Source of the DNA: Epithemia pelagica
Taxonomy: Eukaryota; Protista; Bacillariophyta
Direction of reading: 5' to 3'
NCBI GenBank assembly: GCA_946965045.2
Contig: OX337236.1
Coordinates: 3,410,001 to 3,474,000 of the forward strand
DNA: 64,000 nt
The translations under genes and the position numbers were made by a program. Positions 3,411 through 60,106 of the stretch are shown here, in pieces (position 1 is the first letter of the stretch; every line of letters starts with the position of its first letter). The notes under the pieces are model-generated. The model worked only from the letters and a program-made list of their open reading frames with translations. It did not search any database and was not told the DNA's origin.

Positions 3411-3425
3411 TATTTTGGAACAACC

Positions 3426-15196: not shown

Positions 15197-15644
15197 GCAG
15201 TGGTATCATTCCAATTCATATTCGTCCACAGCCTGGGTCCCCAACGTTGCTAGAATCCGATTCATGGTTTAATGAAATACAAGGCTTTCATCAAGGCTCT
15301 GCAGAGCTCCATTCACAGCGTCCAAAAGCTCGATTTCGGTCCACTTGCTAGAGTCAACCAAGACAACAAGATGATGCACCGCCGCTCTGCTCTGTGGATG
15401 TTGTCCATCTTTTGTTTTTTGTTTGTTCTTGGGAACAGATTCTGTGGATGATCCCATCTTCTTTCGGTCAAAAGATACATGAAAGATACCATGTGGTGCC
15501 TGTGGTGCTGTCATGAAGTCTATATGCGACACACTCGCTCCAAAGCTTCCACGCGTAATATGTAGGCTCTTCTGCACATCGGTCCGCATCCATCACGGCC
15601 GCAAACGCACTGAAAACTCTGTCGCAGTCACAATGTTTGCTACC

Positions 15645-16847: not shown

Positions 16848-19800
16848 AATTTGCAACGTATTGCATGTATGTCGTAACAATAGTGGAATTATAGCATCAT
16901 CATTTTACTCTCAAACAGTAGTTGGATTGTTTTCTTCGTGACATTGCGACCTATAGAGATATCCTGTACACCGTTGTACTAGTAGAAAACGAAAGTTACA
17001 CTATCAGGCCTTGGATATAGATGCCCATGGTACCATGCCTCTCTGCTGTTGAATAGGTCGAGTTATCTTCCTGTGGAAGATTATGGTTGCGTGCTTGAAA
17101 CACTAAACGCAGCAACTCGTTTGGACGGTCGTCTTCGTTCCGACCATGCATTGAATTGTGGGGTCCGGTCCTTCTATGGCCCATGACTGTGTGAGAGGAC
17201 AATACCCCGTGTCTCGACGCTTGTGGTTTTGGGTGACGGGACATTTGCGAATCCTTTGGAATTTGTGACACCGACGTGTGTTCGATATTTTCTCCAATAC
17301 AGCAGCTATACTTTATCATCAGGTCAGCAATTTGCTTGCGTCGATCCAGCAATCAGTCTCTCCACAGTGGTGTGGCTCGTTGACAGGCTACGGTCATCGG
17401 TCCATGGGGATCCACAAGAACAATTGCAGAGCGCAAAGTACCCACTTTCCCATGGCTCTCACGGAGGAAGGCGAAAACGACCATGGCAGTGCTGCGACAT
17501 GCCCAACCACCACCTCGTGTCCAAGTATGGCTCGCTTGATTGCGTCCATACTTTGAACCAGACGGCTTTTCCATTGCAACGTTTGGATTTCTAAATGACT
17601 GGTCGTCCGATGCTCTTGTTGATGTAGTAGAGTGCGTCCAGGGACTTGAGACTTGCCTTGGTGCGAATGCAATCGGGTGGCTTGATCATGTGTGATGCTT
17701 GTTGGAGATCTTGTGCTTCTTGCTTTTCAATACAGAAGTTGTCCTTGTTTGTTGTGAACCTTTTTTCTGGAGAATACCATGGGATCGAATACCTCACCAT
17801 ATCGCATGCGCTCTGTCTTCTGATCAATTTTGGCACCCCATCTCGTCGTTGATGTCAAAGTGTCGCGTCGTCTCTCGTTGTCGATTTTGTGGATGCAAAA
17901 AGATACCTTTTCACTTCTCAGCGGTGGATTCGTGAAAGGCCTAAGAATCTTGTGTAAAGAGAGTGGTGTGTGAAACGCGAGGAATGATCTGTTTGATGCC
18001 CCGAATGCCTGCCACGTGGCGTGTGGAGACAGAACTGAAGAAAAGAAACAGAGAAGAAGAAGAGAAGGTCTACGTTGGACGAAATATCTGAGACAACAAG
18101 ACGGGACGAATCACAGCACGATGGACGACGACCTATACCGCCGATACGTGTGTTGATTGTTGATGCTCCTCCTCGGCAAAGATCCCAACACCACCACCAA
18201 CTCTCAAGTACAAGCTGTCCTTTCCACAGCAAAATGGCAGTCGTTCGAAGCCACGAAATGTAGCTAAAGAAGGATCATCCCAAGTGGCGGTGTGGCACCA
18301 ATGGCTCGTCATGGAGCCTATATATTGTCGAAACCAAAAGCACGGTGACAAGGACAAGGACATGGAACAGACTCCAGCATATAATAAAATGTCATTCCAA
18401 CAGCAAGTGCCACCAATGGCTCGTCAGGGACGCTACTGACTGTTTTGTCATGAAATGTATCCATTTCAGGAATCACATGGTATAGGTTCCTTGGGGAACC
18501 CCCAACAACACACTCCCAGTGGCGCAACAATACTCATGTCTCGATCGCACTGTCGTCGTCATTCTCACCAACAAGGTCATTGACGGACCCATCGCGCTGC
18601 TGCGTACCACTTGGTAATTGTTTTGAAGCAACAAGAAGACTGGAGCCTTTATTGTGTGGCATTGTTGTGAGGAATGCGGCCAATGTCAAAGAGATCATGA
18701 CGACAATGTACTCTGCCGCCGATTGCCAATGGTAGCCGGGGCAACAAACACGAGGCATTTACTTCTCTTTGTCGCAAGGATTGGCTGGACGGAAAAAGAC
18801 CAACGATTGGAAGACACGTACTCGCCATGGGCGTGGAATGGAACAAGGAGGCCATCAAGCTAGACCAACGAGTGTTCGCTGGGGCTCGATGATTCACCAA
18901 ACAACACGACGGTCGACCGCCACATGGTCGATGCTTTCATCCTCCTGGCGACAACAACGACAGCCACAACAATCACCGCTCTCTTGTTTGTGTTGGTCAT
19001 CGCGCCGTTCCGTCGACGACACTGGCCATTGGAGCCGAATTACTGGGCGGCAAAAAGGAACAGGAAGAATTTTACGATCCCCAGACCGAAGCCACGGCAG
19101 TCGCCACTGCGGACGACACGGACAACAACAAGTCCAATGGCGCATCCTGGGATCGATTTGCCGACCGATTGACCTTTTCGGACGACACGGTGGTCAGTGT
19201 GGCCCGACAACTGCAACGTTGCATTTATCAAGTCTTGTATGAGGACGCCGAATTGGAACCTGTGACAGACAACAATGAGGTGGAGTTGCAGGCCTATGCC
19301 ACCACGTTGGTATGGGAAAACACCCTTTGAGTCGTTGTACCTCCAATCTAAGAAACCCAAAACAACCAACATGAATCCATTGGAAGCGTTGAGACAGTGT
19401 TCCTTGGATGACTTTGAACGTATTGATGGGGCCCTTACGGAGGGTCGACCACTCCCCAACCACACGTATAAAAAGATCCACGGCCTGTGGGCAATGTCGT
19501 TGCTTCTCGTCGACTCGGTATGCGTAAGGAACCAACAACCAGACGAACTGTGGACCTGTTTGTATATTCCAACAACGCAAGGCTTGCAGCAACTGGATTG
19601 TCCATTTTTGTCATCTTTCTTATTGTTCTTGGAAAAGAATACTACTCGACCAGAAATGTTCCACTTGGTCCGCAAAGCCACGTGGTGACCACCTCTTCTT
19701 GTTGGCACCCAACAACAAATTGCTGTTCTATTACGAGAGGGGATTGGAAACAAACCGTGGTTGCAGGCAAGGAGCATGGTTCTTTGCGAGAGTCACCACG

Positions 19801-25865: not shown

Positions 25866-26105
25866 TGAATAAAAACTGACGGCCAGACGCAATATACGGC
25901 TTGCAACAATCAAACTATCAGAAATTATGATGACTAAACTAGGGGTGCCCTTTGGGGGCAAATCGCTCACGTAGGGGCCAAACAGCGACCACGGTACCCA
26001 CTAGCGAACACATAACTAGGGGCCGGGCGATGCCAGGCGGTGCGTAGCGAGGCATGGCGAGGCCCTTCGTAGGTTACAAAGGGGGCGCCCGTGATTATTT
26101 ATTCA
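25866..26105 (-). repeat. 3' LTR (240 bp)
   Basis: tgaataaaaactgacgg...gtgattatttattca. The ends are an 8-bp inverted repeat, TGAATAAA/TTTATTCA. Matches 33039-33278. Confidence 0.97.
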
Positions 26106-33038: not shown

Positions 33039-33278
33039 TGAATAAAAACTGACGGCCAGACGCAATATACGGCTTGCAACAATCAAACTATCAGAAATTA
33101 TGATGACTAAACTAGGGGTGCCCTTTGGGGGCAAATCGCTCACGTAGGGGCCAAACAGCGACCACGGTACCCACTAGCGAACACATAACTAGGGGCCGGG
33201 CGATGCCAGGCGGTGCGTAGCGAGGCATGGCGAGGCCCTTCGTAGGTTACAAAGGGGGCGCCCGTGATTATTTATTCA
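33039..33278 (-). repeat. 5' LTR (240 bp)
   Basis: Same sequence as 25866-26105; lies upstream of gag on the minus strand. Confidence 0.97.
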
Positions 33279-34593: not shown

Positions 34594-36102
34594 GATGCTG
34601 ATATCTCACCCTTCTCCACATCGACATTAGCTTGTAAACGCGCAAGGTCCGATACTCACCGTGGTGATGAAGGGACGGATGAAAACCTAGACGTTTTGTA
34701 ATAAGTCATTGACTTGTTTTCTATGTTCGATCGCAATCCTAGAACCTAGTTAGTGTTTACTCAAAAGTAGAAAGAACCTGTTGCAAGATAGAATGTGCTT
34801 GTTTGTTGTCAAAGGCATGGAAGGAACGATCCGACTTGTGTGTGTCTACGAGTGGTACTACGCCTTGGCCATGACCTTGTGGTGGTATCATGGCACTTCT
34901 TTACACGGCAAACCGTCATCGATTGGTAACTGTGGTAGCTACGGCAAGAACCGACTGTGTTGTATTCCAAAAAAGTTCTCAAATTGGCTTTGTTTCAATT
35001 TTCTAGAGTTTGATGAATCCGACAAAAGGACGAAACAGGTGGGTCCAAAAGTCCGATGATGAGAGGATCAGGAGCAGAAGCACGACAAGGCAACACTTTG
35101 TTGGACCGGATGAGGCCCGCTTCTGATGGTTCGATTTTTGGATGGAAGCAAGGAGGGAGGACCGTGTCATGTCCAATCCCGACACGATAACCAAGAACAG
35201 TGTGCCTTTCGGAGGAGTCACCATGCGACCGAATGTGTTCGATTCTTCACCATCCAGTTTCCTGCTTCCATGGTGGATCGGCGGAACCCTACGTCCAGAG
35301 ACGTATACCGCAACCCTTTTTGCAAGACCCTCTTGGCTACGATCGAACAGCCCACGTTGTCTCCTGCGAATGGAATTTCGTCTCGTCAGGAGGACAGTTG
35401 CAACAAGGACAGTGAAGTCCAAGAGGAACCCACCAAATCGGATCGGTCGTGCCAGTTGTCACAATGGACCAGCACGACAACAAGGAATCCAGCCTTGTCG
35501 TTGACACACCACAACCTCCCGAACTACCAACGCAGCAACAAAGAAGAAGGCCCTCATTGTTCTTCCTCCAAATGAACGAAACTGATGGTATCATTGTCGT
35601 GGAAGTTGGACTTTGTGGGCACTTTCGTGCCATGGACGACGACGAGTCAGGAAACATCCACCACCACTATTTCCTGTCGCAGCATGGCTCGTTCGATCGA
35701 TCATGCCTGGAAACAAGCTCCTCCTCATCGCGATGTCGTGCCCCTCAATGCCAGATCCGCCGAAACCTTCTTGCACGATTACAACACTGTCGCACAAGAG
35801 TTCTCTACCTCCACTTTGTGCCTCGCACTGACCTATTCATCATACAAAAGGACCTCTTCATCATCACAAATAATGCTGTCGCTCTCTCGTCGTCTGCCAA
35901 AAGATACTCTTTTCTTGGGGCTTGTCATGAAATCTATGTGCGATTGATTTTCCTTCACCATCGTACGCAGGACAGGCACACCTTTTCTGTCTCCATAAAA
36001 AACACACCGCGGTCTCCACGCAAAAAAGCAAAGCTTCCACGCGTTGCTGTATTATTATTACAAAAATACCCTCTGTCAACGTATTAGTAAAGCGCCGTGA
36101 CC

Positions 36103-40535: not shown

Positions 40536-41822
40536 ATGGCCACCACACTGAAAGAACAAGCATGGCACTCGGGCCTTGTCCTTTCGGATGAGGCACCTCA
40601 ATGGAATGAAAATGATTGGCCTCCTCTCGAGGGTGGACGGCGCGACGAACATGCTACAGTCGTACTAGATCATCCCGATACGGACAACGACAACAACAAC
40701 AACAACAAGAGACAAACCGTCGTCGTGTTGGGTGGATACCAAGCAGGTCAGGGCAGTCTCGATTCCATTCTTGTATTGAATGTGGCAGCGCCGGACAAGC
40801 ACTGGCGAGAAGGGCCACGCATGAACCAGAAACGTGATGGACATGCCGCTGTTGTGTGCAATGGAGGCATTTACGTGATAGGAGGAAACAATGGAAGATC
40901 ATATTTAGATTGTATCGAACGAATTGACATAAAGAATTTGCTGCATTCACCTTTAACAACAAGCAACAAACATGAGAGGCATTGGACGAGATTGGCATGT
41001 CGCTTATCAACGAGATGATCAGGATGTTGTGATGTTGCGGTTCACAGTCGCGTATCAACGAGACGATCAGGATGTTGTGATGTTGCGGTTCACAACCGAT
41101 ACATTGTTGTAATGGGTGGATGGGATGGAAGGCAAAGGTTGTCGTCGGTGGATATTATTGATACCAGGAACCACACCGTCACTGTGGGACCAAGTATGAC
41201 TGTTCCACGACGATTTTGTACCAGCGCGGTCATTGGTCACCGCATCTTTGTCGTTGGAGGCTATATCGAGAGTGGCAATGTTGACTCGGTGGAGTACTTG
41301 GACTATGCAACACCCTGTGACAGTGATGAGACAGAAAAGGAAACTGACTCGACGTTCATTTCTTTCTCACCCACCTGGACCACTCAGTCGGAGTTGAGGC
41401 TTTCCAATGCACGAATTTCTTGTGCAATGGTTGCCGTGGGATCTTGTCTAGTGGTGGCGGGAGGAGGATGGGGCAATTCATCCGTGGAAGTGTTGGATAT
41501 TCACCGCAACCGCGTGTGGAATCTCCCACCATTCGTGAATCACCGCAATGGCTGCAGTATGGTGACTGTTGTCAATAAAGTTGCCGTGATTGGTGGATGG
41601 AAAATTCCTTCCTGTGCGACATTGCCACTAATCGACAAGAATACATTCTTTCGTCGACTCTGTGAGCAGCAGCCCAATCGATGGTATCATTCTCTTGAAG
41701 GTTTGGGTATCCGAGATGATGATATCTCACCCTTCTCCACATCGACATTAGCTTGTAAACGCGCAAGGTCCGATACTCACCGTGGTGATGAAGGGACGGA
41801 TGAAAACCTAGACGTTTTGTAA
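40536..41822 (+). pseudogene. Kelch-repeat gene K9 interrupted by an in-frame TGA at 41016-41018 inside a 48-bp tandem duplication
   Basis: ORFs 40536-41018 and 41112-41822 are in the same frame. The duplicated unit tatcaacgaga(t/c)gatcaggatgttgtgatgttgcggttcaca has TGA in the first copy and CGA in the second. Confidence 0.85.
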
Positions 41823-43049
41823 TAAGTCATTGACTTGTTTTCTATGTTCGATTGCAATCCTAGAACCTAGTTAGTGTTTACTCAAAAGTAGAAAGAACCT
41901 GTTGCAAGATAGAATGTGCTTGTTTGTTGTCAAAGGCATGGAAGGAACGATCCGACTTGTGTGTGTCTACGAGTGGTACTACGCCTTGGCCATGACCTTG
42001 TGGTGGTATCATGGCACTTCTTTACACGGCAAACCGTCATCGATTGGTAACTGTGGTAGCTACGGCAAGAACCGACTGTGTTGTATTCCAAAAAAGTTCT
42101 CAAATTGGCTTTGTTTCAATTTTCTAGAGTTTGATGAATCCGACAAAAGGACGAAACAGGTGGATCCAAAAGTCCGATGATGAGAGGATCAGGAGCAGAA
42201 GCACGACAAGGCAACACTTTGTTGGACCGGATGAGGCCCGCTTCTGATGGTTCGATTTTTGGATGGAAGCAAGGAGGGAGGACCGTGTCATGTCCAATCC
42301 CGACACGATAACCAAGAACAGTGTCCCTTTCGGAGGAGTCACCATGCGACCGAATGTGTTCGATTCTTCACCATCAAGTTTCCTGCTTCCATGGTGGATC
42401 GGCGGAACCCTACGTCCAGAGACGTATACCGCAACACTTCTTGCAAGACCCTCTTGGCTACGATCGAACAACCCACGTTGTCTCCTGCGAATGGAATTTC
42501 GTCTCGTCAGGAGGACAGATGCAACAAGGACAGTGAAGTCCCTCCAGAACAAGTCCAAGAGGAACCCACCAAATCGGATCGGTCGTGCCAGTTGTCGCAA
42601 TGGACCAGCACGACAACAAGGAATCGAGCCTTATCGTTGACACACCACAACCTCCCGAACTACCTACGCAGCCACAAAGAAGAAGGCCCTCATTGTTCTT
42701 CCTCCAAATGAACGAAACTGATGGTATCATTGTCGTGGAAGTTGGACTTTGTGGGCACTTTCGTGCCATGGACGACGACGAGTCAGGAAACATCCACCAC
42801 CACTATTTCCTGTCGCAGCATGGCTCGTTCGATCGATCATGCCTGGAAACAAGCTCCTCCTCATCGCGATGTCGTGCCCCTCAATGCCAGATCCGCCGAA
42901 ACCTTCTTGCACGATTACAACACTGTCGCACAAGAGTACTCTACCTCCACTTTGTGCCTCGCACTGACCTATTCATCATACAAAAGGACCTCTTCATCAC
43001 AAATAATGCTGTCGCTCTCTCCCTCTCTTCGTCGACCAAAAGATACTTT
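41680..43049 (+). repeat. Segmental duplicate of ~34560-35910; also copied in inverted orientation at ~59070-60106
   Basis: Near-identical spacer DNA and identical spurious ORFs (34781/41902, 35126/42247/59438). Confidence 0.9.
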
Positions 43050-43542
43050 ATTTCGTGCCAGGCCAAAGTCGAGGCCAAGCCAACCACGATATTCGTCTGT
43101 CTGCCACACCAAACTTTGGCCCAGGCCACTGGCCTGCCAGTAGTATCACGTCATTATTTTCAGAATAATTACTTATTATTTCTCCCAGGCCAACGGTCTG
43201 ACCCTCTTCCAATGCAGTCTGTCCTTACCACCAAAGACATAAGATACATACGGCGATAGGTGCATGCATACTCTCAGTCGCCAAAGCATACCGTCCTCAA
43301 TGGACGGCATTCCAGGCGTTCATCGCCCTGATACTACTGTACAAATCCATTCGTAGATGCCTGGGGATGCAGCGTTTACCCATCTTCCACTCTTTTTTGT
43401 TGCATGGCATTGGCCATCATTGGCCATCCTATTTCATGTCCAAATCATTAGGAACGATCATCATAGGCATCCACATCTTCTTTTACGCATAGGCTAAGAT
43501 AGAAACAGTCTCATAATTTCATTAAAGAGGCAACTACAAAGC

Positions 43543-46500
43543 ATGTCCACCCCTCCTTCTCGTGCCCCTTCTTCTCGTCGTTGTCGTCCTCATCGTGAGG
43601 AGGAAGATGACTCCCTTGTCAGCAGTCCTGAGCGATCTCCCCAGCGTACTCCACGCAATGGATCTACAACAACGCCTACTCCTACAACGCCTGCTCCTAC
43701 AACCCCTACGGCTAACGCTACAGCAACGGAGATGGAGGAGGAATCTCCCATCGGTATGGACGACGAAGAGATGGAAACGATGATGGAATCATTGACGAAA
43801 ACCGTAAGCGATTCTCTCAAAAACGAAAATACGAGAAAAGCGTACGAATACAAAATCAAGGAGTATTTGAGTTTTTGCCGAATTCACCGTGCCTACCTGC
43901 CTGCTGGATCGCAGTTTCTCGTGGATGAACCCGGTACTTTCTATTTTATTTTTTACAACGTGTTTCGCGAAAAAACAAAAGGAAAACGAAAAAAACCTGG
44001 AGATTTCGATTACGCAGACTTCAAGCATGTTATCAGAACATACAAGCCTATCATCAATCTTCTGAAACACTCTCCCGGTGCCAAAATCCCTCCAGGCAAT
44101 CTTGATCCCACTAACCCCCTCTCCGAATCTACAATCAATACGTACAGGAGTGCTCTCAAACACCAATGGGACACTCAGGGGTCGAAGAAAGACGGAGAAC
44201 GAGTATGGAGCGATGTGGACTCTCCACGTGTCCGATCTCTGATATATATAGCGAAGGTACGTTTAACCAGTGAATTGGTGACTGTCTGTCGACTGTTGAC
44301 CCTGTCTGTGCATATCATCTCTCATAACTATTATTTCTACAGTCACGGACTACCCGTGTTAAGAAACGTAACTACAAGGAGAAAGTGAATGAGACATCTC
44401 CCTTCGAGCATTTTGAAATGATTAACAAGATCGAGTATATGTTTTGGTCTCGCGGTTGCAGGTATGACGGAAAGTCGAATACCAACAAGACTGTCTTTGC
44501 TTCTTTACGACACCGCTTTTCATTCTTGATGAACTACGCCTCTATACTACGGAGCGAGAGTCTGCATCTAGCGGAATTGTCCGACCTAAGAGTTTTTGCG
44601 ATTAACCGTCCTGGCGATATCGACAAGATGCCGATTGTACTCATGGAGTGCCAAACGGGAAAGACCATAAAAGCCGGTGCACCATCACAGTTTGCTCGTG
44701 CAACACGTCATCGAAACGTAATGGCCTGTCCCATTGGAGCAATGGCTATGTATTTGTTTTTTCGGTTCCATATGACCGAGGAATTCTCTGGAACATTCAA
44801 CCAACCTGATTTACGGAACAACTCTTCTTGGTTTGACTTCAAAATTCTTACAAGTGCAGATGGTTCACCTACAGAATCAGTGAAGGTTTCGAATTTTCGT
44901 ACAGAAATCGAGAATATCTTCAATCAACTCGGTATCGTGTCGGACTACACTACCCACTGGTGCAGGCACATTGCACCGACTCATTGCGAATTCAAAGAGA
45001 TAAGCCCTGAGCTTATCAAACAGTTAGGTAAGTGTTCGCTGGTACTACTCTGCTCATATGACAGCCAAATGTATCTCACTGGTTTATATTTTTGTACACA
45101 GGTAACTGGGATAGAGATACCCAAGAGACACGTTATTCTTCTAAAATACCTATTGCTGCGATCCGTTGTATGGCTGGCTTCGAACAGTCTGACGGATACT
45201 GGCTACCCAGAGACAGACTGACCGTACCACCTTCACTGGCACAAAAAATATGGCCCTGGCTGGAACAGAAGGAGGAATGGGTTTCATCAGACTTAACAGA
45301 TGCCGAAAAAGAGCAGAACACGAGTGCCAGGAAGAAACACCCTACCGCATATTGTTTCCTACATTTCCTCCGTTTTCTCCGTGATGTCCTTATACAAGAT
45401 GTGGCTGCCATTATGTCGATTCTCGAGCACCCTGACCCTACCGACTCGCAAGAGTCAGAAATCCGTTTGACACACATTCTTTTTACTGATTTTCCCATAT
45501 TCCAAGATCCTGAGTTTCTGGCCTATAAAGACGAAATGCACAAGTTACTTTCGAAACTTAACGAAACTTCCCAAGATCCCAAGATACGTGCTATTGACCA
45601 GTGTCTTCCCGGTGTGAATCAACGATTTGAGCATCTCAATGTGGAACATGAAATTTTGAAGGAACACATGTACCAGATTTTCTTTGAAATCGACAATGTT
45701 AAGGAAAGTATGACGAAGAGTACAGAGGCTATTATCAACCACTTGAAGCAAATGGAAATTCGGATGAACATGGAAACTGATCGGAAAATCATGCGTTTCT
45801 CCGAGGCCATATCATCATCTTTCCAATCCCGGATCGGAACAACTGTCGAAGCCATATCCGAAGCGACACAACATGCAGCTCGAATCACCTTCTCCACGAA
45901 TGAAAACGAAGGCAACGATGTCACAGATACTGACCCCACCAATGAAATCTCTTCACCAGCCCGACAACCAGTGCCTCCTCCACCACCTTCACCACAAGAT
46001 GCATTTGCAGCCGCCTTCCCACCACCTTCACCACAACAAGATGCATTTGCAGCCGCCTTCCCATGTACTCTTCCGTCACCCAATACCGTACACCCTTCCC
46101 CCGAGTCTGACACTCCAACTAATGACCCCCCGAATGTTTCTCCGAACAATCCCTCTCCGTCGGAAGACAATATCGAAAATTTCCTCGGTATGAAACTACC
46201 GTGCACCCATGTTGCAAGACACCGACTAACGATGAAGCGTTTGTACTTTGAGTTTTTTGGTCTTGGCGAACGACAGGATCAACCAGTGAAACTTGGATTC
46301 CATGGTCTTGACCTGAAATTCCAATTCCATTGGCGGAAACCATATCAACAAAGCGACAAGACATTGTACTCTCGTGTCCAGACTATCGTACGGGGCATAG
46401 CTACTCATCATGGCGTTGAGTTTGGTTCGTGGTCGGACGACATCGAGGCATTCTGTCTCAAATGGGATCCCTTTCTTCAACGCAAAGGGGTAGCTGGCGT

Positions 46501-46627
46501 GTTCCGTCAATTTCAGAAAGACGGAATCACCACCAAACGCGGAAATCGATCGCCAAACACTCCACCACCATCCACACAAAACAACACTCCTACAATTCAC
46601 CCGCGAGTAACTCCTGCCAGTACATAA
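43543..46627 (+). CDS. Crypton-like tyrosine recombinase (Ndc10 domain II-like) with C-terminal GCR1_C-like domain; 3 exons (43543-44256, 44343-45027, 45102-46627), ~974 aa
   Basis: YR motifs LRHRFSFL..ASILRSES..AELSDL (catalytic R), RHRNVMACPIGAMAMYLFFRF, THWCR (HxxR), LGNW and TRY...AIRCMAGF (catalytic Y). Introns gtacgt...ctacag (86 bp) and gtaagt...acacag (74 bp) restore one frame. C-terminal TMKRLYFEFFGLG...HWRK...YSRVQTIV resembles GCR1_C. Confidence 0.85.
45980..46060 (+). repeat. In-frame tandem repeat in the recombinase linker (PPPSPQDAFAAAF / PPPSPQQDAFAAAF)
   Basis: 39-bp and 42-bp units ccaccaccttcaccaca(aca)agatgcatttgcagccgccttc. Confidence 0.85.
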
Positions 46628-46838
46628 TTTGATATAGTCTACAATAACATAGATTTCATTACCTCATACCATCAGCATAGAGTGGAGTTTAAGCGAACGT
46701 AGCTCCAAGCAGGTGGAGTACATGGTAGTGGGGTATGCCGTGTTTCCGACACAGCGGAGTAGTGCTCTCTGGCGTTACACGGCACCTTCCTTTCCCCTTA
46801 AGATCGTCGTCATAGTTTTTACAAAACTCATTTTGACA

Positions 46839-47639
46839 ATGAGCACTCACAATAACAATGGTCTTTACGACTCAATTCAACAAAATGAGCCTGTCCAAGG
46901 TGACCATGAAGGAACCGATCCTTCACAGGCTCGTTCCAATCATGGCAACCATCGTGGTAACCATGGTACAGCAATCAATGACCGCTTTGTCATATCTCCT
47001 CCCGTGGACACGGAATCCGCGATCGCTCACTCTTCTGCACATCCTCTTAACGTGAGAGCTACGTTGTCCGCAACTGGTTGGATCCCCCCCCTCTCCCACG
47101 GCCGTCTGGCATTCAACACTCGCTTTTCTCGTACCTTTGTGTTTCGGAACTGCAGTCCGCCTGTCCGTGATGCGATGCAGGTCATCACCGCGCTTCTCAC
47201 AGAAATCGAAGGCTTTGACCCTGCTGTCGCTGCTTCACTCCGTCACGAGAACGGTACAGAATTCTCTGACCGCACGAGACATGGTGGAACACGCGGTATT
47301 CCTGATGGAAAGTATCTGATTCGTCTAGATTTGTACCAAACAGCTGTTCCTGGTTACATCGGCCGAGAAGATTGGGAGGCAATCCAAGTAGTGAAGACTT
47401 CAATTATTTACGAAGACAACCACCCCATCGCCAAATTAGTGACATCTGCCCCCAAAGTGTACCTGTTCAATAAGAGGGATGAGTCGTGGACATTGGTGAA
47501 TCATATGCCCATCCACCACTCAACGGACGAAGAACGATTCTCCGTGGAATCCGGTATTCTCGTATCTCCCGCATTTAATGGTGTGGAGGTCTACCCCCAA
47601 TGCTCTTTCCGAATGTCTTATCCTCCTTACCGTACCTAG
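46839..47639 (+). CDS. Element cargo ORF A, unknown function (~266 aa); paralogue of ORF B
   Basis: Long ORF bounded by AT-rich spacers; ATG at 46839 is preferred over the upstream GTG. The C-terminal half aligns with ORF B. Confidence 0.65.
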   Translation: MSTHNNNGLYDSIQQNEPVQGDHEGTDPSQARSNHGNHRGNHGTAINDRFVISPPVDTESAIAHSSAHPLNVRATLSATGWIPPLSHGRLAFNTRFSRTFVFRNCSPPVRDAMQVITALLTEIEGFDPAVAASLRHENGTEFSDRTRHGGTRGIPDGKYLIRLDLYQTAVPGYIGREDWEAIQVVKTSIIYEDNHPIAKLVTSAPKVYLFNKRDESWTLVNHMPIHHSTDEERFSVESGILVSPAFNGVEVYPQCSFRMSYPPYRT

Positions 47640-47718
47640 ATAACCTTAATTATAGTCTCAATGTTTCAGTACACGAATTATAATTTTAGTCATACATATC
47701 TAATAGATTACCACCGTC

Positions 47719-48675
47719 TTACAACGGATAAGTACTCATGAATCCCGTGAATTTAAGATCCTGAGTAATCATACAAGTACGGATCACCATATTATCAGTC
47801 GCGATTGTTCGATGCCCCAGGTAATCCCACGGCGAATCAGCGTTGCGTTTGAAAATATGAACATATTTTGAGGAACTCACGATACGCAAAATTCCCACAC
47901 CCATGGAATACATGACGTAGGTCTCCACAGTCTGATAACAATAGTACTCCGGGAAAGTGAAGATTCGTTCCCTGTCAATATGGGGACCACACCGATAAAA
48001 ATCAACACGAGCCAAATGCGCACCATCTACTACCACCATAGGACAATGATCTCGCTCCAGTCTCTCACTTGGTGAAACTTGCAACAATCTACCCTGGGGA
48101 GTATCACGAAACCCCTTCCCACGAAGAAATCCAACAATAAGATCGTTGAAGTGACCGGTTGGTTCATAGAGTCCCGGATAGTCATGCATCTTGAAACGTC
48201 GTGTCAGCGGTTCCTGCTCAGCCGGTTCACGTCGCCAAGCGACTGGCTCTGTCATAGGGATGGGATGTGTCGGCCGTTCTGGAAAGTTCACACGTTGAGT
48301 AATTTGCGTTCGTACTCCACCGCGTAATTGTGCCCGAGTCAGTCCCTCTACTACTTCTCCAGTAGACTGTACGACATCTGGCGAAGACCGGGAACCATCA
48401 TTCTCGTTGTTGTTGTCCGTAGTCTCCTCTGCAGCCATCCCCTCGTGATCGTTATTGTTGTCGTTGTCTTTGTTGTTTGTAGGTTTGTTGTTGTCGTTTG
48501 TAGTTCCGCTGTTGTCGTTGTTGTTATTGTTGGTGTCCTGGGCAGGCCGTTTGTGATCTTCCTCGTTGTTGATGCTGTCCTGGGCAGGCCGTTTACGATC
48601 TTCCTCCGGCGATGCAGTGAGGTCAATGACCTCGCTTTTGCGTTTGTTTCCACCCTTTTTGTTGTCAGATGACAT
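47719..48675 (-). CDS. Element cargo ORF B, unknown function (318 aa); N-terminal KRK plus VIDLT motif
   Basis: ATG-initiated, convergent with ORF A. Low-complexity N-terminus with a 14-aa repeat (EEDRKRPAQDSINN/EEDHKRPAQDTNNN), then a globular-looking C-terminus similar to ORF A. Confidence 0.7.
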   Translation of the reverse strand: MSSDNKKGGNKRKSEVIDLTASPEEDRKRPAQDSINNEEDHKRPAQDTNNNNNDNSGTTNDNNKPTNNKDNDNNNDHEGMAAEETTDNNNENDGSRSSPDVVQSTGEVVEGLTRAQLRGGVRTQITQRVNFPERPTHPIPMTEPVAWRREPAEQEPLTRRFKMHDYPGLYEPTGHFNDLIVGFLRGKGFRDTPQGRLLQVSPSERLERDHCPMVVVDGAHLARVDFYRCGPHIDRERIFTFPEYYCYQTVETYVMYSMGVGILRIVSSSKYVHIFKRNADSPWDYLGHRTIATDNMVIRTCMITQDLKFTGFMSTYPL

Positions 48676-49023
48676 GTTTTATGAACCTAACCTACGCCTA
48701 CGTCTAACCTAAAGATCAAAATGTAACAACCGTCCGATACCGTGTGTGCTTGTCGTCTCATGGTGAATCGACCATCCAAAAAAGGCACGAAAAAAGGTCG
48801 AAGACACCAAAAAAGCTAAAACACGAGTCATGTTTCGTTTGTACTGGACAATAGTAGTCCCTCGCTAAAAATAGACGACAATATGTTAATTACAACTGGC
48901 GATACTGCCAGACATGATCGCCATACAGGTTACATTATCGCCATAAAGGACCAAATCGCTAACAAAATTGAGCGTTGATCCTCATTCTATCATGATTCGG
49001 TCTTATAAAATCCATTTTGAAAA

Positions 49024-49605
49024 ATGAGTGAATCCTGTGGCGGGGATCGTGTATGTGTATGGAATATTGGTGATATCGCGGTGGTGAACTCTCGTTCCTC
49101 CAGTCGCAAGAACTACCTGGGATGGGTCACTCGTGTTCCAGAGACCATTGGATCGAGGAAGCGTGTGACACTCCAATTTGCAGATGGACAGAAATCTTCC
49201 TACCAACCCAAAAATTTAAGATTGCCCCGTGACCCAAGATCGGCGCGGACCAGTGTACAGACAAATCCATTCTACCAAGTGTTCTGTAACGAGTATATTA
49301 TCAACCAAGCGAAAAGGAACGTCAACATAATTGAAGAAACCCAACCGACAGAAGACACAAGGGAGGATCGCCAAAACAAAGATTCACCGACGCATGAGTC
49401 GCCTATTCCTGATGAAATTCCTTCCGAGATTCCCTTGCATTCTTCACGTCGTTATCGTACAAGTGCACGCGAGACAACCGCCAGAGATGAGACACAAGGC
49501 ATACTTCTCGAAATTGTGAAAGAATTGAAACTGTTAAATCTTCGTGTATGTGACATGGAAGACCGAATTAAAAATGTCGAAGATGATGGGTCCATCATGT
49601 CGTAG
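49024..49605 (+). CDS. Element cargo ORF C (193 aa): N-terminal SH3/KOW/Tudor-like beta-barrel pattern, C-terminal coiled coil
   Basis: WNIGDIAVVNS...YLGWVTRV...KRVTLQFADG..SSYQPKNLR fits a small beta-barrel pattern. ILLEIVKELKLLNLRVCDMEDRIKNVE has heptad character. The fold call is by eye. Confidence 0.6.
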   Translation: MSESCGGDRVCVWNIGDIAVVNSRSSSRKNYLGWVTRVPETIGSRKRVTLQFADGQKSSYQPKNLRLPRDPRSARTSVQTNPFYQVFCNEYIINQAKRNVNIIEETQPTEDTREDRQNKDSPTHESPIPDEIPSEIPLHSSRRYRTSARETTARDETQGILLEIVKELKLLNLRVCDMEDRIKNVEDDGSIMS

Positions 49606-49775
49606 TATCAGATTAGCTTAATTAATTTAGTAGACACATATGCTTACTTACTCTGCTTTGACAACGTAGGGCTTAGATAGTCTTGTGTATTTAGACTGTC
49701 CCGTACTCTAGCGATATAGTGGGTCGAGTGTCCACACAGGCAAGAAACAAGAAACCAAACAACCAACAAGCAACG

Positions 49776-50285
49776 ATGGCAAACGAAGATCTCGTCGCCC
49801 GTGTGATCGCAACGATTGAAAAAGATGAAGAAGAGGACCTACCAACATCTCCTCTTAAGGGTTTTTTGCGTTACCTACAGAAAGAAGGTGAAGATACACA
49901 ACAACGCAAAAAGCAGAAGCTCAATGGGCCGAGTGACAACAAACATAACAGGAACAGGAACAGTCCTGTTACTGTAGATCCAAGTGGAGTGGTATGGGAC
50001 AACAGGATCGTTGCAATCACGGAGTACAGTGACGGATCGTGTACTCTTCACTACGACGACGAGAAGTCACGTCATGTCCCAGTGCCAACAAAGAAAAACA
50101 AGCTAGTCCAGCTCAAGATGGAAATGTTTCTGCCAAAACAAACGAAGAACGACAACAAGAGTACCACACGGAAGCAAACTTCCGAAGGGACAACAATCCA
50201 GCGGGAGTCGAATGCTTTGAAGACACTAGAAGAGTCCGAGAAAGAACATCGTAAACGCTACGAAGACTTAGTGAACAATAGTTAA
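49776..50285 (+). CDS. Element cargo ORF D (~169 aa); paralogue of ORF E, PIP-box-like motif
   Basis: N-terminus LVARVIATIEKDEEEDLPTSPLKGFLRYLQKE aligns with ORF E; contains QLKMEMFL. Confidence 0.65.
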   Translation: MANEDLVARVIATIEKDEEEDLPTSPLKGFLRYLQKEGEDTQQRKKQKLNGPSDNKHNRNRNSPVTVDPSGVVWDNRIVAITEYSDGSCTLHYDDEKSRHVPVPTKKNKLVQLKMEMFLPKQTKNDNKSTTRKQTSEGTTIQRESNALKTLEESEKEHRKRYEDLVNNS

Positions 50286-50406
50286 ACTATGTATCGGATA
50301 TTTAGTACAAAAATATTCAATATAGAAACAAATTGTACTTATACATAAAACAAGTTGTGTCACGTAGGAAAGATAGAGCGAGAACGTATGGACGGATATT
50401 TTCGAT

Positions 50407-50534
50407 AAGTAACATAATAGGCATTAGGTCTTTAATAACCGTCCCGTTTAATCTTTAATAACCGTTCCAGTAAGTAACCTAATAGGTATTAGGTCTAAAT
50501 GAGCCCTTCCATTTAGTCTTTAATAACCGTTTCC
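50407..50534. repeat. AT-rich ~64-bp tandem duplication with three TCTTTAATAACCGT motifs inside the YR element
   Basis: taagtaac(a/c)taatagg(c/t)attaggtct at 50407 and 50471; tctttaataaccgt at 50429, 50452 and 50517. Confidence 0.8.
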
Positions 50535-50668
50535 GTTGGATTTTTAAATCAAGTGAATGGAATACATAGGGATGTAGTAACTCGCCCGGCAGACTGATAC
50601 CGAGTCAGCAAGAGCCAGCCAGACATAGGGTTGGAGCGGAACGCAGAAGAAACAAAGCGGATTTGACC

Positions 50669-51259
50669 ATGACGGACCCCCAGCAGCTACTTGACCGCGT
50701 CAAATCAACCATCCTACGGGATGAAGAGGAAGGAGCACCGACGGATTATCTCCATGGGTTCTATAAAGCCCTACAAGAGGAGATGATGGAGGAAATGATG
50801 GAAGAAGAAGTGGAGATGAGCGAAAAAAGCAACAACCAAATGGACGAAGACAAGGACGACGACGACGACGACGACGACTCTGTGAAGACCTTCGACAAGA
50901 TCCTTCGCATGAACATGTCGGATAGTGACGACAGTGATGCAGAAGAGCCCTTAGATGTGGATTCCGAGATGGACGAGGCCAAGAGGATGAAGCTGATTGA
51001 AAAATACAACCGTATTATGAAGACGGGTCGAGTGGATGCTACGGAGGACAACGAAGAAGAAGACACTCACAACGACCGCGTGACAGCGATCGATGAATTC
51101 AGAGATGGAACTCTCATGCTGTACTACGGAGGGTATCGCGCAGTTCGATACCCTCCGAAGAAGGCAGACAAAAACAACAAAACAACAGTCCAGACGAAGA
51201 TGACTACGTTTTTCACGAGGAGCGACAAGAACAACGCAACTCGGAAGGACACGAAATAG
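50669..51259 (+). CDS. Element cargo ORF E (~196 aa), acidic; canonical PIP-box-like motif near the C-terminus
   Basis: LLDRVKSTILRDEEEGAPTDYLHGFYKALQEE aligns with ORF D. D/E-rich middle region; QTKMTTFF at 51191-51214. Confidence 0.68.
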   Translation: MTDPQQLLDRVKSTILRDEEEGAPTDYLHGFYKALQEEMMEEMMEEEVEMSEKSNNQMDEDKDDDDDDDDSVKTFDKILRMNMSDSDDSDAEEPLDVDSEMDEAKRMKLIEKYNRIMKTGRVDATEDNEEEDTHNDRVTAIDEFRDGTLMLYYGGYRAVRYPPKKADKNNKTTVQTKMTTFFTRSDKNNATRKDTK

Positions 51260-51830
51260 TTACGTTAAATTAGTACCGAAGAGTTAGGCATATCAACTGT
51301 GAATGAAAATTAGATACCAAGACCATGGACACGAGCAATGGCGGAGAAATTGTAGACGATTTTGACCGAAATGTGGACAGAAATGTCGCATCATGAACGA
51401 AAATGTCCGGCAACAAGACCCAATCCCGTTGTCCCATACCGTTACGGGTTTGAATTTGATTGTACGATGATTGGAGGGGCAGGCGTGGGTGGCTGGCGAA
51501 AGAAAGCGCAGGACAATAAATTTCGAGCCTGGCCATTACTTCAGTGGGCCAAGCTTGACCTTTGGCCCCGTAGTGCGACTACGAATAACCCAGGCCAAAG
51601 CCTAAAAATCTAGAGAAAATAATGCCTCTTTTTTCTTGGGGCTTGCAATGAAATCTATGTGCGATTGATTGTCCTTCACCATCGTACGCAGGACAGGCAA
51701 AACTTTTCTGTCTCCATAAAAAACACACCGCGGTCTCCACGCAAAAAAGCAAAGCTTCCACGCGTTGCTCTATTATTACAAAAATACCCTCTGCCATTTC
51801 TTGTCAACGTATTAGTAAAGCGCCGTGACC

Positions 51831-52934
51831 ATGACAACGACACTGCAAAAGCAAGCATGGCAGTCGGGCCTTGTCCTATTTGACGAGACACCTGAGTGGA
51901 ATATCGAGGACTGGCCTTCTCTTGTGGATGGATGGCGTGCAGGTCATGCTTCGGTCGTACTGAACCATACCGATAACAACCAAGAACAAACCGTCGTCGT
52001 GTCGGGAGGATATCGAACAGGTCAAGGCGAGCTAGATTCCATTCTTGTATTAAACTTGGCAGAATCAAACAAACAGTGGCGAGACGGACCACGCATGAAC
52101 CAGAAACGTGATGGACATGCCGCTGTTGTGTGCAATGGAGGCATTTACGTGATGGGAGGAGACAATGGAGGTTCAGATTTGAATTGCATGGAACGAATCG
52201 ACGCCAATGATTTGCTTCGATCATCCTTAACAACCACCACCACGCAGGATAGTCATTGGACAACATTGAATTGTCGCTTATCAACGCCACGATGGGGATG
52301 TGGTGCAGTCGCGGTTCACAACAGATACATCGTTGTAATGGGTGGCTACAACGATCGTTATTTGTCGTCGGTGGATATTATAGATACAAACAACCACACT
52401 GTCACTGCGGGACCATCCATGACTGTTCCACGACAACTTTGTGGCAGTGCGGTGATTGGCCACCGCATCTTTGTCGTTGGAGGTTGGAACGGTAATGAAT
52501 ATCTTGACTCGGTGGAGTATTTGGACTATGCAACACCCTTTGACAATGATGAGACAGAAAAGGAGATAGGCTCGACGTTGATTTCTTTCTCACCCACCTG
52601 GACCACTCATTCTGATCTGGTCCTTTCCAATGCACGAACTTCTTGTGCAATGGTTGCCGTGGGATCTTGTCTGGTTGTTGCAGGAGGATGGGGCAATTCA
52701 ACCGTGGAAGTCTTGGATACGCACTTCAACCGCGTGTGGAATCTTCCACCATTCGGAAATCACCGTGATGGCTGCAATATGGTGACTGCCAATCAAGTTG
52801 CCGTGATTGGTGGTGTGTACAATTTTACCTGTGCGACATTACCACTAATGGATAGGAATTCGTGGTGCTTTCGTCGACTCTGTGACCAGCATCCAAACGG
52901 ATGGTATCAGTCTCTGGATGGACTGAGCATCTAA
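51831..52934 (+). CDS. Kelch-repeat protein K10 (~367 aa), tail truncated by TAA
   Basis: Six blades. The stop falls at the same codon as in K7, and the ARKRARS tail is still readable downstream. Starts about 200 bp after the YR element. Confidence 0.85.
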   Translation: MTTTLQKQAWQSGLVLFDETPEWNIEDWPSLVDGWRAGHASVVLNHTDNNQEQTVVVSGGYRTGQGELDSILVLNLAESNKQWRDGPRMNQKRDGHAAVVCNGGIYVMGGDNGGSDLNCMERIDANDLLRSSLTTTTTQDSHWTTLNCRLSTPRWGCGAVAVHNRYIVVMGGYNDRYLSSVDIIDTNNHTVTAGPSMTVPRQLCGSAVIGHRIFVVGGWNGNEYLDSVEYLDYATPFDNDETEKEIGSTLISFSPTWTTHSDLVLSNARTSCAMVAVGSCLVVAGGWGNSTVEVLDTHFNRVWNLPPFGNHRDGCNMVTANQVAVIGGVYNFTCATLPLMDRNSWCFRRLCDQHPNGWYQSLDGLSI

Positions 52935-53301
52935 CATGCTGATGTTTCTCCCTTTCCTACATCGACATCAGCTCGTAAACGCGCAAGGTCCAATGGAGTT
53001 TATTTCTCTAGTGGTTGACTTGTTTTCAACGTTCGATTGCAATCCTAGGACCTAGTATTATAAGTGTTTACTCAAGAGTAGAAACAATATGTTGCAAGAT
53101 AGAACATGCTTGTATTTTGTGAAAGGCGGGGAAAGAACGACCCGATTTGTGTACCTCTACAAGTGGTACTACGCTTCGGCCATTACCCATTTATATCTGT
53201 CAGTTGTGGGACAGTGCCACAACCGTGACTGTGCAGTCGTGAGACCACACTCTAAATAACACAGAATGGATTGCTAGCTGTGGCACGGAGGCCACCAACC
53301 A

Positions 53302-58900: not shown

Positions 58901-60106
58901 AATGGCAGAGGGTATTTTTGTAATAATAGAGCAACGCGTGGAAGCTTTGCTTTTTTGCGTGGAGACCGCGGTGTGTTTTTTATGGAGACAGAAAAGTTTT
59001 GCCTGTCCTGCGTACGATGGTGAAGGACAATCAATCGCACATAGATTTCATTACAAGCCCCAAGAAAAGTATCTTTTGGTCGACGACGAGAGGGAGAGAG
59101 AGAGCGACAGCATTATTTGTGATGATGAAGAGGTCCTTTTGTATGATGAATAGGTCAGTGCGAGGCACAAAGTGGAGGTAGAGTACTCTTGTGCGACAGT
59201 GTCGTCATCGTGCAACAAGGTTTCGGCGGAACTGGCATTGAGGGGCACGACATCGCGATGTGGAGGAGCTTGTTTCCAAGCAAGATCGATCGAACGAGCC
59301 ATGCTGCAACAGGAAATAGTGGCGGTGGATGTTTCCTGACTCGTCGTCGTCCATGGCACGAAAGTGCCCACAAAGTCCAACTTCCAAGACGGAGTTCAAC
59401 ACAGTTGGTTCCACGACAATGATACCATCCATTTCGTTCATTTGGAGAAGGAACAATGAGTGCCTTCTTCTTTGTCGCTGCGTTGGTAGTTCGGGAGGTT
59501 GTGGTGTGTCAACGATAAGGCTCGATTCGTTGTTGTCGTGCTGGTCCATTGCGACAACTGGCACGACCGATCCGATTTGGTGGGTTCCTCTTGGACTTGT
59601 TCTGGAGGGACTTCACTGTCCTTGTTGCATCTGTCCCCCTGACGAGACGAAATTCCATTCGCAGGAGACAACGTGGGTTTTTCGATCGTAGCCAAGAGGG
59701 TCTTGCAAGAAGTGTTGCGGTATACGTCTCTGGACGTAGGGTTCCGCCGATTCACCATGGAAGCAGGAAACTTGATGGTGAAGAATCGAACACATTCGGT
59801 CGCATGGTGACTCCTCCGAAAGGGACACTGTTCTTGGTTATCGTGTCGGGATTGGACATGACACGGTCCTCCCTCCTTACTTCCATCCAAAAATCGAACC
59901 ATCAGAAGCGGGCCTCATCCAGTCCAACAAAGTGTTGCCTTGTCGTGCTTCTGCTCCTGATCCTCTCATCATCGGACTTTTGGATCCACCTGTTTCGTCC
60001 TTTTGTCGGATTCATCAAACTCTAGAAAATTGAAACAAAGCCAATTTGAGAACTTTTTTGGAATACAACACAGTCGGTTCTTGCCGTAGCTACCACAGTT
60101 ACCAAT
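55960..60106 (-). repeat. Inverted block: spacer + cassette B + K11 + downstream module homologous to ~12840-14450
   Basis: The reverse complement matches 42043-43049 joined to 51631-51830 (no YR element), then a Kelch gene, then the 3' spacer seen after K3. The left boundary is approximate. Confidence 0.8.
57666..58868 (-). CDS. Kelch-repeat protein K11 (~400 aa), inverted copy
   Basis: N-terminus nearly identical to K10 (MTTTLQKQAWQSGLVLFDETPEWNIEDWPSL); six blades; GKHAR tail. Confidence 0.9.
   Translation of the reverse strand: MTTTLQKQAWQSGLVLFDETPEWNIEDWPSLEGEWRYRHASVVLNHTDNNQEQTVVVLGGYRTGQGELDSILVLNLAESNKQWREGPRMNQKRDGHAAVVCNGGIYVIGGYSEGSCLNCMERIDANDVLQSSFTSSTTHASNWTRLSCRLSKGRHGCCAVAVHNRYIVVMGGYINRYLSSVDIIDTNNHTVTAGPSMTVPREWCASAVIDHRIFVLGGRNADDELDSVEYLDFAEETQNDTLSTVISFSSSWITHSDLVLPKPRAFCAMVAVGYCLIVAGGSRQTVEVLDTHHNRVSNLPSLGNDRFDCTMVAVANQVAVIGGGYNPTCATLPLLDKNSWCFRQLCEHQFNGWYRSLEGADIRDEDISPFFTSKSAGKHARPNTLHGDKEKDQASSRLFL

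Follow-up and report, generated by a model that had tools for sequence, protein, structure and literature searches.

A probable multi-gene transposon of the Crypton class with its own conserved accessory genes in the diatom Epithemia pelagica

The 64,000-nucleotide stretch of Epithemia pelagica DNA analysed here in full (hereafter the window; GenBank assembly GCA_946965045.2, contig OX337236.1, positions 3,410,001 to 3,474,000, forward strand) contains an 8,580-bp insertion that is best read as an intact, autonomous and recently moved DNA transposon of the Crypton class. Its tyrosine recombinase (YR) gene is followed by five extra genes, A to E, which on this reading are not acquired cargo and form the element's own conserved set. 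The probability given to this reading as a whole is about 0.8. Feature positions, numbered from the first letter of the window unless another locus is named, are collected in Table 1.

The insertion interrupts one unit of an array of genes for Kelch-repeat proteins and lies about 200 bp upstream of one Kelch open reading frame (ORF). In a self-alignment of the window, the left flank (42032-43049) matches 60115-59066 on the minus strand at 94.3% identity, and the right flank (51631-52994) matches 59068-57720 on the minus strand at 86.0%. The two matches abut exactly in an uninterrupted paralogue (60115-57720, minus strand), and the junctions were also read directly. This bears out an earlier description of the window, made from its letters and ORFs (the sequence-only reading), in which the flanks were said to rejoin at an uninterrupted paralogue near 59040-59085 on the minus strand. 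A second uninterrupted paralogue is present: 33928-35888 matches 41041-43021 at 92% identity, and 35907-37267 matches 51628-52995 at 80%. With a slash marking the boundary, the filled left junction reads ...GATACTTT/ATTTCG and the filled right junction ...GCCTCTTT/TTTCTTGGGG; CTTT is single in both empty paralogues. Because the length of the T-run varies among the paralogues, the crossover can be placed only to within CTTT. Both empty sites are paralogues of the filled one and not alleles of it, and the interior of the insertion has no second copy within the 64-kb window by self-alignment.

Further copies exist elsewhere in the genome, with both termini the same and the flanks different; the sequence-only reading had named a lack of such copies as an outcome that would speak against it. 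They came to light when all 60.5 Mb of the genome were searched at the DNA level and the regions retrieved were aligned, and are labelled C2a, C2b, C4, C10a, C10b and C10c, the window's own element being C9. Identical ends with unrelated flanks occur at five full loci; copies start with CTTT/ATTTCGT[GA]CCAGGCCAAA and finish with GAAA[AG]TAATGCCT/CTTT. The CTTT is present at both ends of four of the five full copies and at the left edge of five of the six left ends, the sole exception being the old C10b copy, whose terminal repeats are mutated to TTCT and CTGT. Given the near-identical C2a copy and the empty site within the window, the recent activity proposed for this multi-gene YR element is upheld: the element has moved recently, and as a single unit. 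Insertion took place at a site containing CTTT(T), through recombination inside a microhomology of 4 bp, and no inverted repeats were left behind. Among the copies of the 8.6-kb form in this genome, the one in the window alone retains all six genes intact. Pattern searches across the genome turned up no further element ends and no swarm of short derivatives.

Individual copies show structural peculiarities. The C2a copy also adjoins Kelch genes, and its flanks are not homologous to the array of the window. In the C4 element the left-terminal 18-mer is present in two perfect copies 99 bp apart (C4:1092059 and 1092158; locus L030, about 3059 and 3158), which amounts to a duplicated left end. C10b has lost the recombinase core (element positions 835-2729) and has in its place 2,975 bp (L027:8691-10000 plus L028:1-1666) that hold only short ORFs and have no match among the other loci compared. 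The right third of C10b and its flank are present twice, 39 kb apart (C10:1854095-1855948 and 1893473-1895326; L029 and L027), as a segmental duplication.

The first gene of the element encodes the recombinase and starts 493 bp from the left end. Its three exons add up to 2,925 nt (974 codons plus stop) and are separated by two GT..AG introns, in agreement with the intact, intron-containing YR gene for a 974-aa protein that had been placed about 490 bp from the left end. The intron 1 donor GTACGT (44257) lies at the same place as the GTAAGT donors of three diverged relatives (L052, L053 and L054). Intron 2 bridges NDC10_II profile position 198 in one ORF to position 197 in the next ORF, which is in another frame. 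Domain searches were run exon by exon, and Pfam NDC10_II is matched by exons 2 and 3; this domain represents the Crypton-related recombinase fold of Ndc10/Cbf2. The putative Arg-I of the catalytic set (44550-44552) lies in ILRSES, the H-x-x-R motif is HWCR (44955-44966), and the catalytic Tyr (45134-45136) lies in RYSSK, where it is kept in the family and replaced by His in the dead C4 copy. ILRSES, HWCR and RYSSK are invariant among intact family members. A nine-member alignment keeps ILRSES, SPSQFARATRH, THWCRH (with H-x-x-R) and Q-E-[ST]-R-Y-S without change, and the recombinase core has 115 invariant columns among six family members.

Other searches with the recombinase delimit this assignment. 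The ESM Atlas clusters nearest to exon 2 are eukaryotic Tyr recombinase plus DUF3504 (scores 0.94-0.95) and one unnamed diatom cluster; exon 1 gives only a weak Pfam match, to Phage_int_SAM_4 (E = 0.2); and sequence searches of the exons against the PDB return no match. The GCR1_C-like domain that the sequence-only reading attributed to this protein is not confirmed, as neither the C-terminal 405 aa of exon 3 nor exon 1 matches GCR1_C in Pfam even at E ≤ 10. Comparison with DUF3435 and DUF3504 had also been suggested, and the exons searched singly match neither in Pfam at E ≤ 0.1, nor Phage_integrase. None of eight element ORFs has a reverse transcriptase (RT) or DDE transposase domain in Pfam, RVT_2 being found only in nested copia elements of other copies. 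A short in-frame tandem repeat (45973-46063; period about 40 bp, 90% identity) lies in the Pro-rich tail of exon 3, and C10a has a 3-bp deletion there.

The ends of the element carry arrays of a short hexamer. The two 250-bp arms together contain seven GGCCAA sites, compared with three in the intervening 8 kb (Fisher p = 2.5e-7, about 30-fold enrichment). In the sister subfamily formed by the diverged relatives, the hexamer is GGATAA, found eight to nine times in the arms versus two to four times inside (p ≤ 1e-7). GGATAA occupies left-arm positions 16(+), 36(-), 68(-), 116(+) and 140(+), and the left-arm layout is nearly the same in both subfamilies, at 12/16 (+), 67/68 (-) and 139/140 (+). 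A hexamer that changes in sequence while its layout is kept looks like the pattern left by a DNA-binding protein co-evolving with its sites, and the left arm is likely a protein-binding array together with the promoter region. The right arm contains a conserved small palindrome, GGGCCAAG...CTTTGGCCC. Between C9 and C10b, the first 140 bp are 93% and the last 186 bp 91% identical, compared with 76-87% for the genes.

Joining the two ends on paper gives, in both subfamilies, AATAA-N7-TTATT(T)CGT[GA]CC, in which the CTTT or TATTAT repeat starts at spacer position 6; the terminal direct repeat of the sister subfamily is TATTAT (5-6 bp). The AATAA-N7-TTATT arrangement is an observation on short, AT-rich half-sites, not proof of a core site. 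Arm-versus-arm comparison detects no terminal inverted repeats (scores 17-21 versus a shuffle mean of about 16 and maximum of 24-26) and no long terminal direct repeats (score within the shuffle range). A split palindrome or inverted repeats across the joined ends were considered and rejected, since the scores fall in the shuffle range and minimum-free-energy folds differ between copies. Many short binding repeats near the ends are a feature of the arm-type sites of lambda-family integrases and of the subterminal repeats of hAT and CACTA elements. As in those systems, the hexamers are found on either strand in the outer 150-250 bp or so of each end, apart from the crossover core. Such arrays are undescribed for Cryptons, whose ends have been called featureless except for a 4-6 bp repeat (PMC3212892, PMC13465315).

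The five ORFs downstream of the recombinase are all open and include two paralogue pairs, as had been noticed from the letters: A/B (29% over 77 aa, E = 2e-7) and D/E (E about 1e-6). Their families accompany the recombinase throughout the genome. Protein searches find 11 recombinase loci, eight of which have B-like ORFs within 2-4 kb; on C1, C8 and C16 the recombinases have C-like and A/B-like ORFs as neighbours; and B-like and E-like ORFs occupy matching positions in the C4 and C2b elements (25-45% identity, tblastn). L052, L053 and L054 are complete elements whose recombinase core is about 58% identical to that of the window and whose accessory proteins are 24-36% identical. L053 and L054 have C homologues (33-36% identity, E = 6e-30 and 2e-38), all three have A-type homologues adjoining the B-type genes, and the E homologues end in QMKMEDFF or QKNIKDFF. 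The element is one member of a small family that divides into two deep subfamilies. Gene order is recombinase(+) A(+) B(-) C(+) D(+) E(+) in the window element and recombinase(+) C(-) B(+) A(+) E(-) in the sister subfamily. Gene D is limited to the C9/C2a lineage, its segment being absent from C10b.

Accessory genes A, B, C and E are under purifying selection. Between C9 and C10b, the ratio of nonsynonymous to synonymous substitution rates (dN/dS) is 0.32 for gene A, 0.29 for B, 0.43 for C and 0.37 for E, alongside 0.33-0.47 for the non-catalytic parts of the recombinase; for the B-like gene of C4 and C2b it is 0.23.

Outside the family these genes have no recognisable counterparts. An A/B profile run against 1.84 billion protein representatives gave 19 matches, of which about nine are genuine. 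Five of the genuine matches were traced to their source (P0001, P0006, P0009, P0010 and P0002, the last by its exact sequence match to a C2b ORF), and all five belong either to this genome or to a single other assembly of the species; the matches other than the genuine ones are FG-GAP/RHS-type beta-repeat proteins aligned over one short stretch. Word-index searches with exon 3 and B, PDB sequence searches, and scans of metagenome and viral contigs returned no family relatives beyond this species. Protein searches of the genome found no free-standing intact host copies of B or E, and no host-gene synteny was found for A to E. The sequence-only reading had named their occurrence as syntenic host genes unlinked to the YR as an outcome that would speak against it, and they were not found as such.

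Some sequence variation within and around the accessory genes is of separate interest. Gene A contains a poly-C run (about 47076-47083) that is C8 in the window copy and C18 in C10a, and in C2a a 2-bp insertion at this spot shifts the frame of the gene; the spot is either a true hotspot of slippage or an assembly error in a homopolymer. An intron at this variable spot was ruled out, the spot being the poly-C run itself. The last third of a 390-aa B-like ORF of C4 is not B-like sequence: it is antisense to the recombinase 3' end, brought there by a deletion. The sister subfamily has an extra small conserved ORF near the right end (90-135 aa, 37% identity between copies; L052:11957-12364, L054:12926-13309, L053:12743-13015) with no counterpart in the window element. 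A tandem duplication of about 13 kb encloses the L052 element, with the same small host ORFs on both sides (444-4162 and 13568-17268), including Glyco_hydro_2_C fragments.

The D/E family consists of small acidic proteins that share a predicted clamp-binding motif. A canonical PCNA-interacting protein (PIP) box is present in all seven D/E-family proteins and in no other protein of the element, whereas shuffled D/E proteins give one in 0.2-1.1% of trials per protein. In the five C9/C4-subfamily members aligned, the box has the form Q-x-x-M-x-x-F-[FL] and occupies one shared alignment column. Its distance from the C-terminus is 4-14 residues in six of the seven proteins, including the two sister-subfamily members (4-5 residues), and 50 residues in D. 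All belong to the motif class Q-x-x-[ILM]-x-x-[FY]-[FYL], usually placed close to a protein terminus, from which binding to PCNA is predicted. Among transposon-encoded proteins, the pogo transposase carries a PIP box. LINE-1 ORF2p also carries one (PMC10830420). The canonical motif Q-x-x-[ILM]-x-x-[FY]-[FY] is common to these cases, but there it belongs to the catalytic protein, whereas in the window element a distinct small acidic protein, present in duplicate (D and E), carries it towards the C-terminus.

The A/B family has a confidently modelled fold without a recognisable relative. An AlphaFold2 (AF2) model built from 13 sequences reached a predicted local distance difference test (pLDDT) score of 80.6 and a predicted template modelling (pTM) score of 0.81, and places one helix on a large antiparallel sheet; a first model from five sequences was unusable (pLDDT 41.7). 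No fold match rises above noise, the best being E = 0.02 for Foldseek on the PDB, Z = 4.1 for VIA-align over 48,161 chains and a TM score of at most 0.44 (TM ≤ 0.44) in the Atlas; NTF2-like/SnoaL cones recur weakly in these searches. Identification of A/B as a C48/Ulp1 peptidase, an enzyme with a His-Asp-Cys catalytic triad and a papain-like fold, was rejected on the grounds of no Pfam Peptidase_C48 match, no invariant Cys, a beta-rich model and an Atlas score of 0.80, which is noise level. The N-termini of all four B-type proteins contain a motif resembling a SUMO-interacting motif (SIM), namely VIDLT, LLIDL, VIVID or IYILD ahead of an acidic/Ser patch. In gene B of the window this is VIDLT (48616-48630), in an N-terminus that is otherwise unalignable. 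Shuffled sequences give such a motif 8-50% of the time, and it is offered as a lead, no more.

The C family has 50 invariant columns and no significant match in Pfam at E ≤ 10 or in a PDB profile search. The beta-barrel/coiled-coil protein that the sequence-only reading saw in ORF C is not backed by any profile match, and a Tudor/SH3-like barrel would be a guess.

Movement of the element may be pictured in several steps. The recombinase, perhaps helped by an accessory protein, would bind the GGCCAA arrays in both arms and pair the ends. Strand exchange would then occur at the AATAA-N7-TTATT sequence formed by the joined ends, within CTTT, and would yield an excised circle with the predicted junction ...AATAATGCCT-CTTT-ATTTCGTGCC..., able to reintegrate at a CTTT target. 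The accessory proteins would serve as co-factors of the element, not as passengers, with D and E docking on the host sliding clamp PCNA via the PIP box. Such docking would tie excision or integration, or else the persistence of the circle, to DNA under replication, and would also explain how a cut-and-paste element gains copies. End pairing, strand exchange and the circle are suggested by the accepted Crypton model and by the end anatomy observed; the PCNA step is suggested by the motif.

The features by which Cryptons are recognised (Goodwin 2003; Kojima & Jurka 2011) are present in the element: an R...H-x-x-R...Y recombinase, 4-bp target-matching repeats, neither inverted nor long direct repeats, and no RT or DDE domain. 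Absence of GCR1_C makes the element fit CryptonS rather than CryptonF, in which the YR is fused to GCR1_C; CryptonS is the closest group in this respect, by likeness of features. CryptonA differs in its DUF3504-type recombinase, to which the window element shows a feature-level likeness in the Atlas only. CryptonS elements, known from oomycetes and one diatom, Phaeodactylum tricornutum, lack GCR1_C, have 5-6 bp direct repeats that are mostly TATGG, and in some cases encode one further protein, a C48/Ulp1 peptidase (Kojima & Jurka 2011, PMC3212892). They share with the window element a stramenopile-type host, a YR without GCR1_C, no inverted repeats, short target-matching repeats, low copy number and, in some members, an additional ORF. 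They differ in that this ORF is the peptidase, whereas the window element has five genes from three orphan families and no peptidase; in the repeat, which is CTTT (4 bp) or TATTAT in the window family; and in the hexamer arrays at both ends, undescribed for CryptonS.

Crypton movement has been observed in Chlamydomonas, where active Cryptons insert at a short motif matching their termini, excise cleanly and yet gain copies, CryptonF-1_cRei being the first Crypton observed transposing (Lopez-Cortegano et al. 2023, PMC9977147). As in CryptonF-1_cRei, the terminal motif of the window element recombines with a near-identical target (CACCG/CAYCG there, CTTT here). CryptonF-1_cRei also favours intergenic DNA close to genes, which the position of the window insertion, about 200 bp upstream of a Kelch ORF, resembles. 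CryptonF-1_cRei differs in encoding a single YR plus GCR1_C protein; the window element has no GCR1_C and five further genes. A 2026 summary describes Cryptons as a recombinase with a facultative second gene (PMC13465315), and no paper linking Cryptons to PCNA or describing a multi-gene Crypton was found in the literature searched, Repbase entries not being covered. The element is best filed as a multi-gene variant of Crypton with an accessory module new for the class. The sequence-only reading was right that the layout goes beyond known Cryptons, the published ones having a YR and at most one more gene; its likening of that layout to a captain followed by cargo did not hold.

The main alternative left by the data concerns the circle, which might be a replicating episome rather than a transient intermediate. 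The element would then be the integrated form of a plasmid- or virus-like nuclear episome, with the circle as its main life stage, replicated by the host via the PIP-box proteins D and E; A/B and C would keep the circle on chromatin or in the nucleus, and the recombinase would serve integration and excision. By analogy, the logic would be comparable to that of the yeast 2-micron circle or of bacterial integrative elements. The 2-micron circle carries the FLP recombinase with REP1, REP2 and RAF1, and exists as a free plasmid that has an origin of its own as well as long inverted repeats. It shares with the window element a DNA unit of 6-8 kb in which a eukaryotic YR is joined by a few small element-specific proteins facing the host replication or segregation machinery; it differs in that all window-family copies are integrated and lack inverted repeats. 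The conserved set of element-only proteins, the predicted clamp-binding motif and the low chromosomal copy number would suit an episome, the SIM-like motif of B hints at SUMO-dependent tethering, and the copy gain of Chlamydomonas Cryptons despite clean excision points the same way (PMC9977147). Against this, Pfam and PDB profile searches detect no domain of a replication initiator, polymerase, helicase, capsid or partition ATPase, every copy seen is chromosomal with clean junctions, and viral contigs contain no match. An episomal life stage is accordingly judged unlikely.

Alternatively, A to E may be passengers, selfish or host-beneficial, captured once by the ancestor of the family and kept for a function unrelated to transposition. 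A dN/dS below 1 shows that there is a function and not which one, gene order and orientation are shuffled between the subfamilies, and C4-type elements once existed without A, C and D. This account is nevertheless improbable: protein searches of the genome found no intact free-standing host copies of B or E, the families are orphans confined to these elements, and the PIP box suggests action at sites of DNA replication or repair, where a DNA element would need it.

Least probable is a Starship-like captain with cargo, in which the recombinase would mobilise captured host genes that vary between copies and perhaps benefit the host. Starships, known from Pezizomycotina, resemble the element in having a 5' YR followed by other genes, short terminal repeats and a circle that has been proposed or shown (PMC9156397, PMC11162782). 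The several non-transposase genes behind the recombinase and the differing copy lengths (5.8, 8.6, 9.0, 16 and 24.6 kb) gave this reading its appeal. However, the 16 kb within C2a are two Ty1/copia elements and the extra 10 kb of C2b another copia (RVT_2), so that size varies by nesting and not by cargo. Starships are tens to hundreds of kb long and have a DUF3435 captain with variable, host-derived fungal cargo that is largely unrelated between captains (PMC11162782), whereas the window element is 8.6 kb long, with an NDC10_II/Crypton-type recombinase lacking a DUF3435 match and a fixed, element-specific gene set. As the same gene families recur across the deep divergence to the sister elements, are under purifying selection and have no host or foreign homologues, the captain-plus-cargo reading is largely refuted.

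Several points weigh against regarding the five genes as the element's own co-factors. The 5.8-kb relatives of C4 type are without A, C and D, which shows that a copy could at some time transpose without the full accessory set, although these relatives are dead today. Away from any detected recombinase of the family, a few solitary matches to A and C occur: the C-domain matches are 41% identical and lie inside 350-aa open frames, and the A/B-domain matches are 30-43% identical, some with stops. They could be relics, members of other element families or host relatives. The evidence of conservation comes from one species, within one genome, and the element is known here from its DNA sequence. 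The PIP box is a short motif from which PCNA binding is predicted, and Pfam, PDB profile and fold searches recognise no DNA-binding or enzymatic domain in any accessory protein.

The genomic setting has features of its own. The whole window (1-64000) is a tandem, partly inverted array of at least 14 Kelch-repeat units of about 1.2-2.5 kb that are 75-94% identical. A 240-bp stretch (25866-26105) is repeated 7 kb away (33039-33278) with 100% identity, while the surrounding units are 75-92% identical; the pair may reflect recent gene conversion or a small mobile sequence.

Table 1. Positions of the element and its parts in the window, of the empty sites, and of related copies and matches elsewhere in the genome.
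Feature	Position	Strand	Description
Left CTTT	43046..43049	+	Terminal direct repeat; crossover/target microhomology
Element	43050..51629	+	8,580 bp including right CTTT (51626-51629); starts ATTTCGTGCCAGGCCAAAG, ends GAAAATAATGCCT+CTTT
Left arm	43050..43300	+	GGCCAA at element positions 12(+), 24(+), 67(-), 139(+)
Recombinase exon 1	43543..44256	+	238 codons; N-terminal region, poorly conserved, no Pfam domain
Intron 1	44257..44342	+	86 bp, GTACGT...CAG
Recombinase exon 2	44343..45027	+	Catalytic core part 1; NDC10_II E = 5.6e-17, profile positions 20-198
Intron 2	45028..45101	+	74 bp, GTAAGT...CAG
Recombinase exon 3	45102..46627	+	NDC10_II E = 8.3e-13, profile positions 197-299; then conserved region and coiled/low-complexity Pro-Thr-Asn-rich tail
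Gene A	46839..47639	+	266 aa from ATG (ORF open from 46713); A/B-family orphan domain, paralogue of B
Gene B	47719..48675	-	318 aa; low-complexity N-terminus and A/B-family C-terminal domain (aa 125-318)
Gene C	49024..49605	+	193 aa; conserved N-terminal domain of about 95 aa and C-terminal helix
Gene D	49776..50285	+	169 aa from ATG; diverged E paralogue, internal PIP-like box QLKMEMFL (50109-50132)
Gene E	50669..51259	+	196 aa, acidic; PIP box QTKMTTFF (51191-51214), 14 residues from C-terminus
Right arm	51380..51629	+	GGCCAA at -83(+), -68(-), -37(+) from end; terminal AATAATGCCT+CTTT
Empty paralogous site 1	59066..59085	-	...GATACTTTTCTTGGGG...; window self-alignment
Empty paralogous site 2	~35888..35912	+	...GATACTCTTTTCTTGGGG...; window self-alignment
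C2a	C2:6149412-6174005		26 differences in 8.6 kb (0.3%); recombinase exon 3 split by 16 kb
C10a	C10:1191506-1196032		Left part 98% identical; exon 2 with 14-bp frameshifting insertion; then 1222-aa ORF of another element
C10b	C10:1893476-1902438		Full-length relative, 76-93% identical; recombinase core lost
C10c	~39 kb from C10b		Right-end fragment, flank as in C10b; segmental duplicate
C4			5.76 kb; more diverged element
C2b			16.15 kb; more diverged element
L053 element	5566-13372 of L053
L054 element	5730-13697 of L054
Solitary C-/A/B-like matches	C2:2219637-2219849; C2:2251919-2252131; C13:2824495-2825079; C13:3008570-3008875; C10:2154011; C7:2606174

No class of eukaryotic DNA transposons is less well understood than the Cryptons, and how such a cut-and-paste element gains copies is unclear. 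An intact and very young master copy with six genes offers a handle on the functions of Crypton genes. The clamp-docking motif predicted on a dedicated small protein provides a testable link between Crypton movement and DNA replication, and the subfamily-specific hexamer arrays are a natural specificity swap that should reveal the protein that recognises the ends. The analogy with Starships is corrected as well: a multi-gene element with the recombinase first need not carry cargo. If the circle were instead a replicating episome, the family would represent a eukaryotic nuclear counterpart of bacterial integrative elements and the second recombinase-based nuclear episome after the yeast 2-micron circle.

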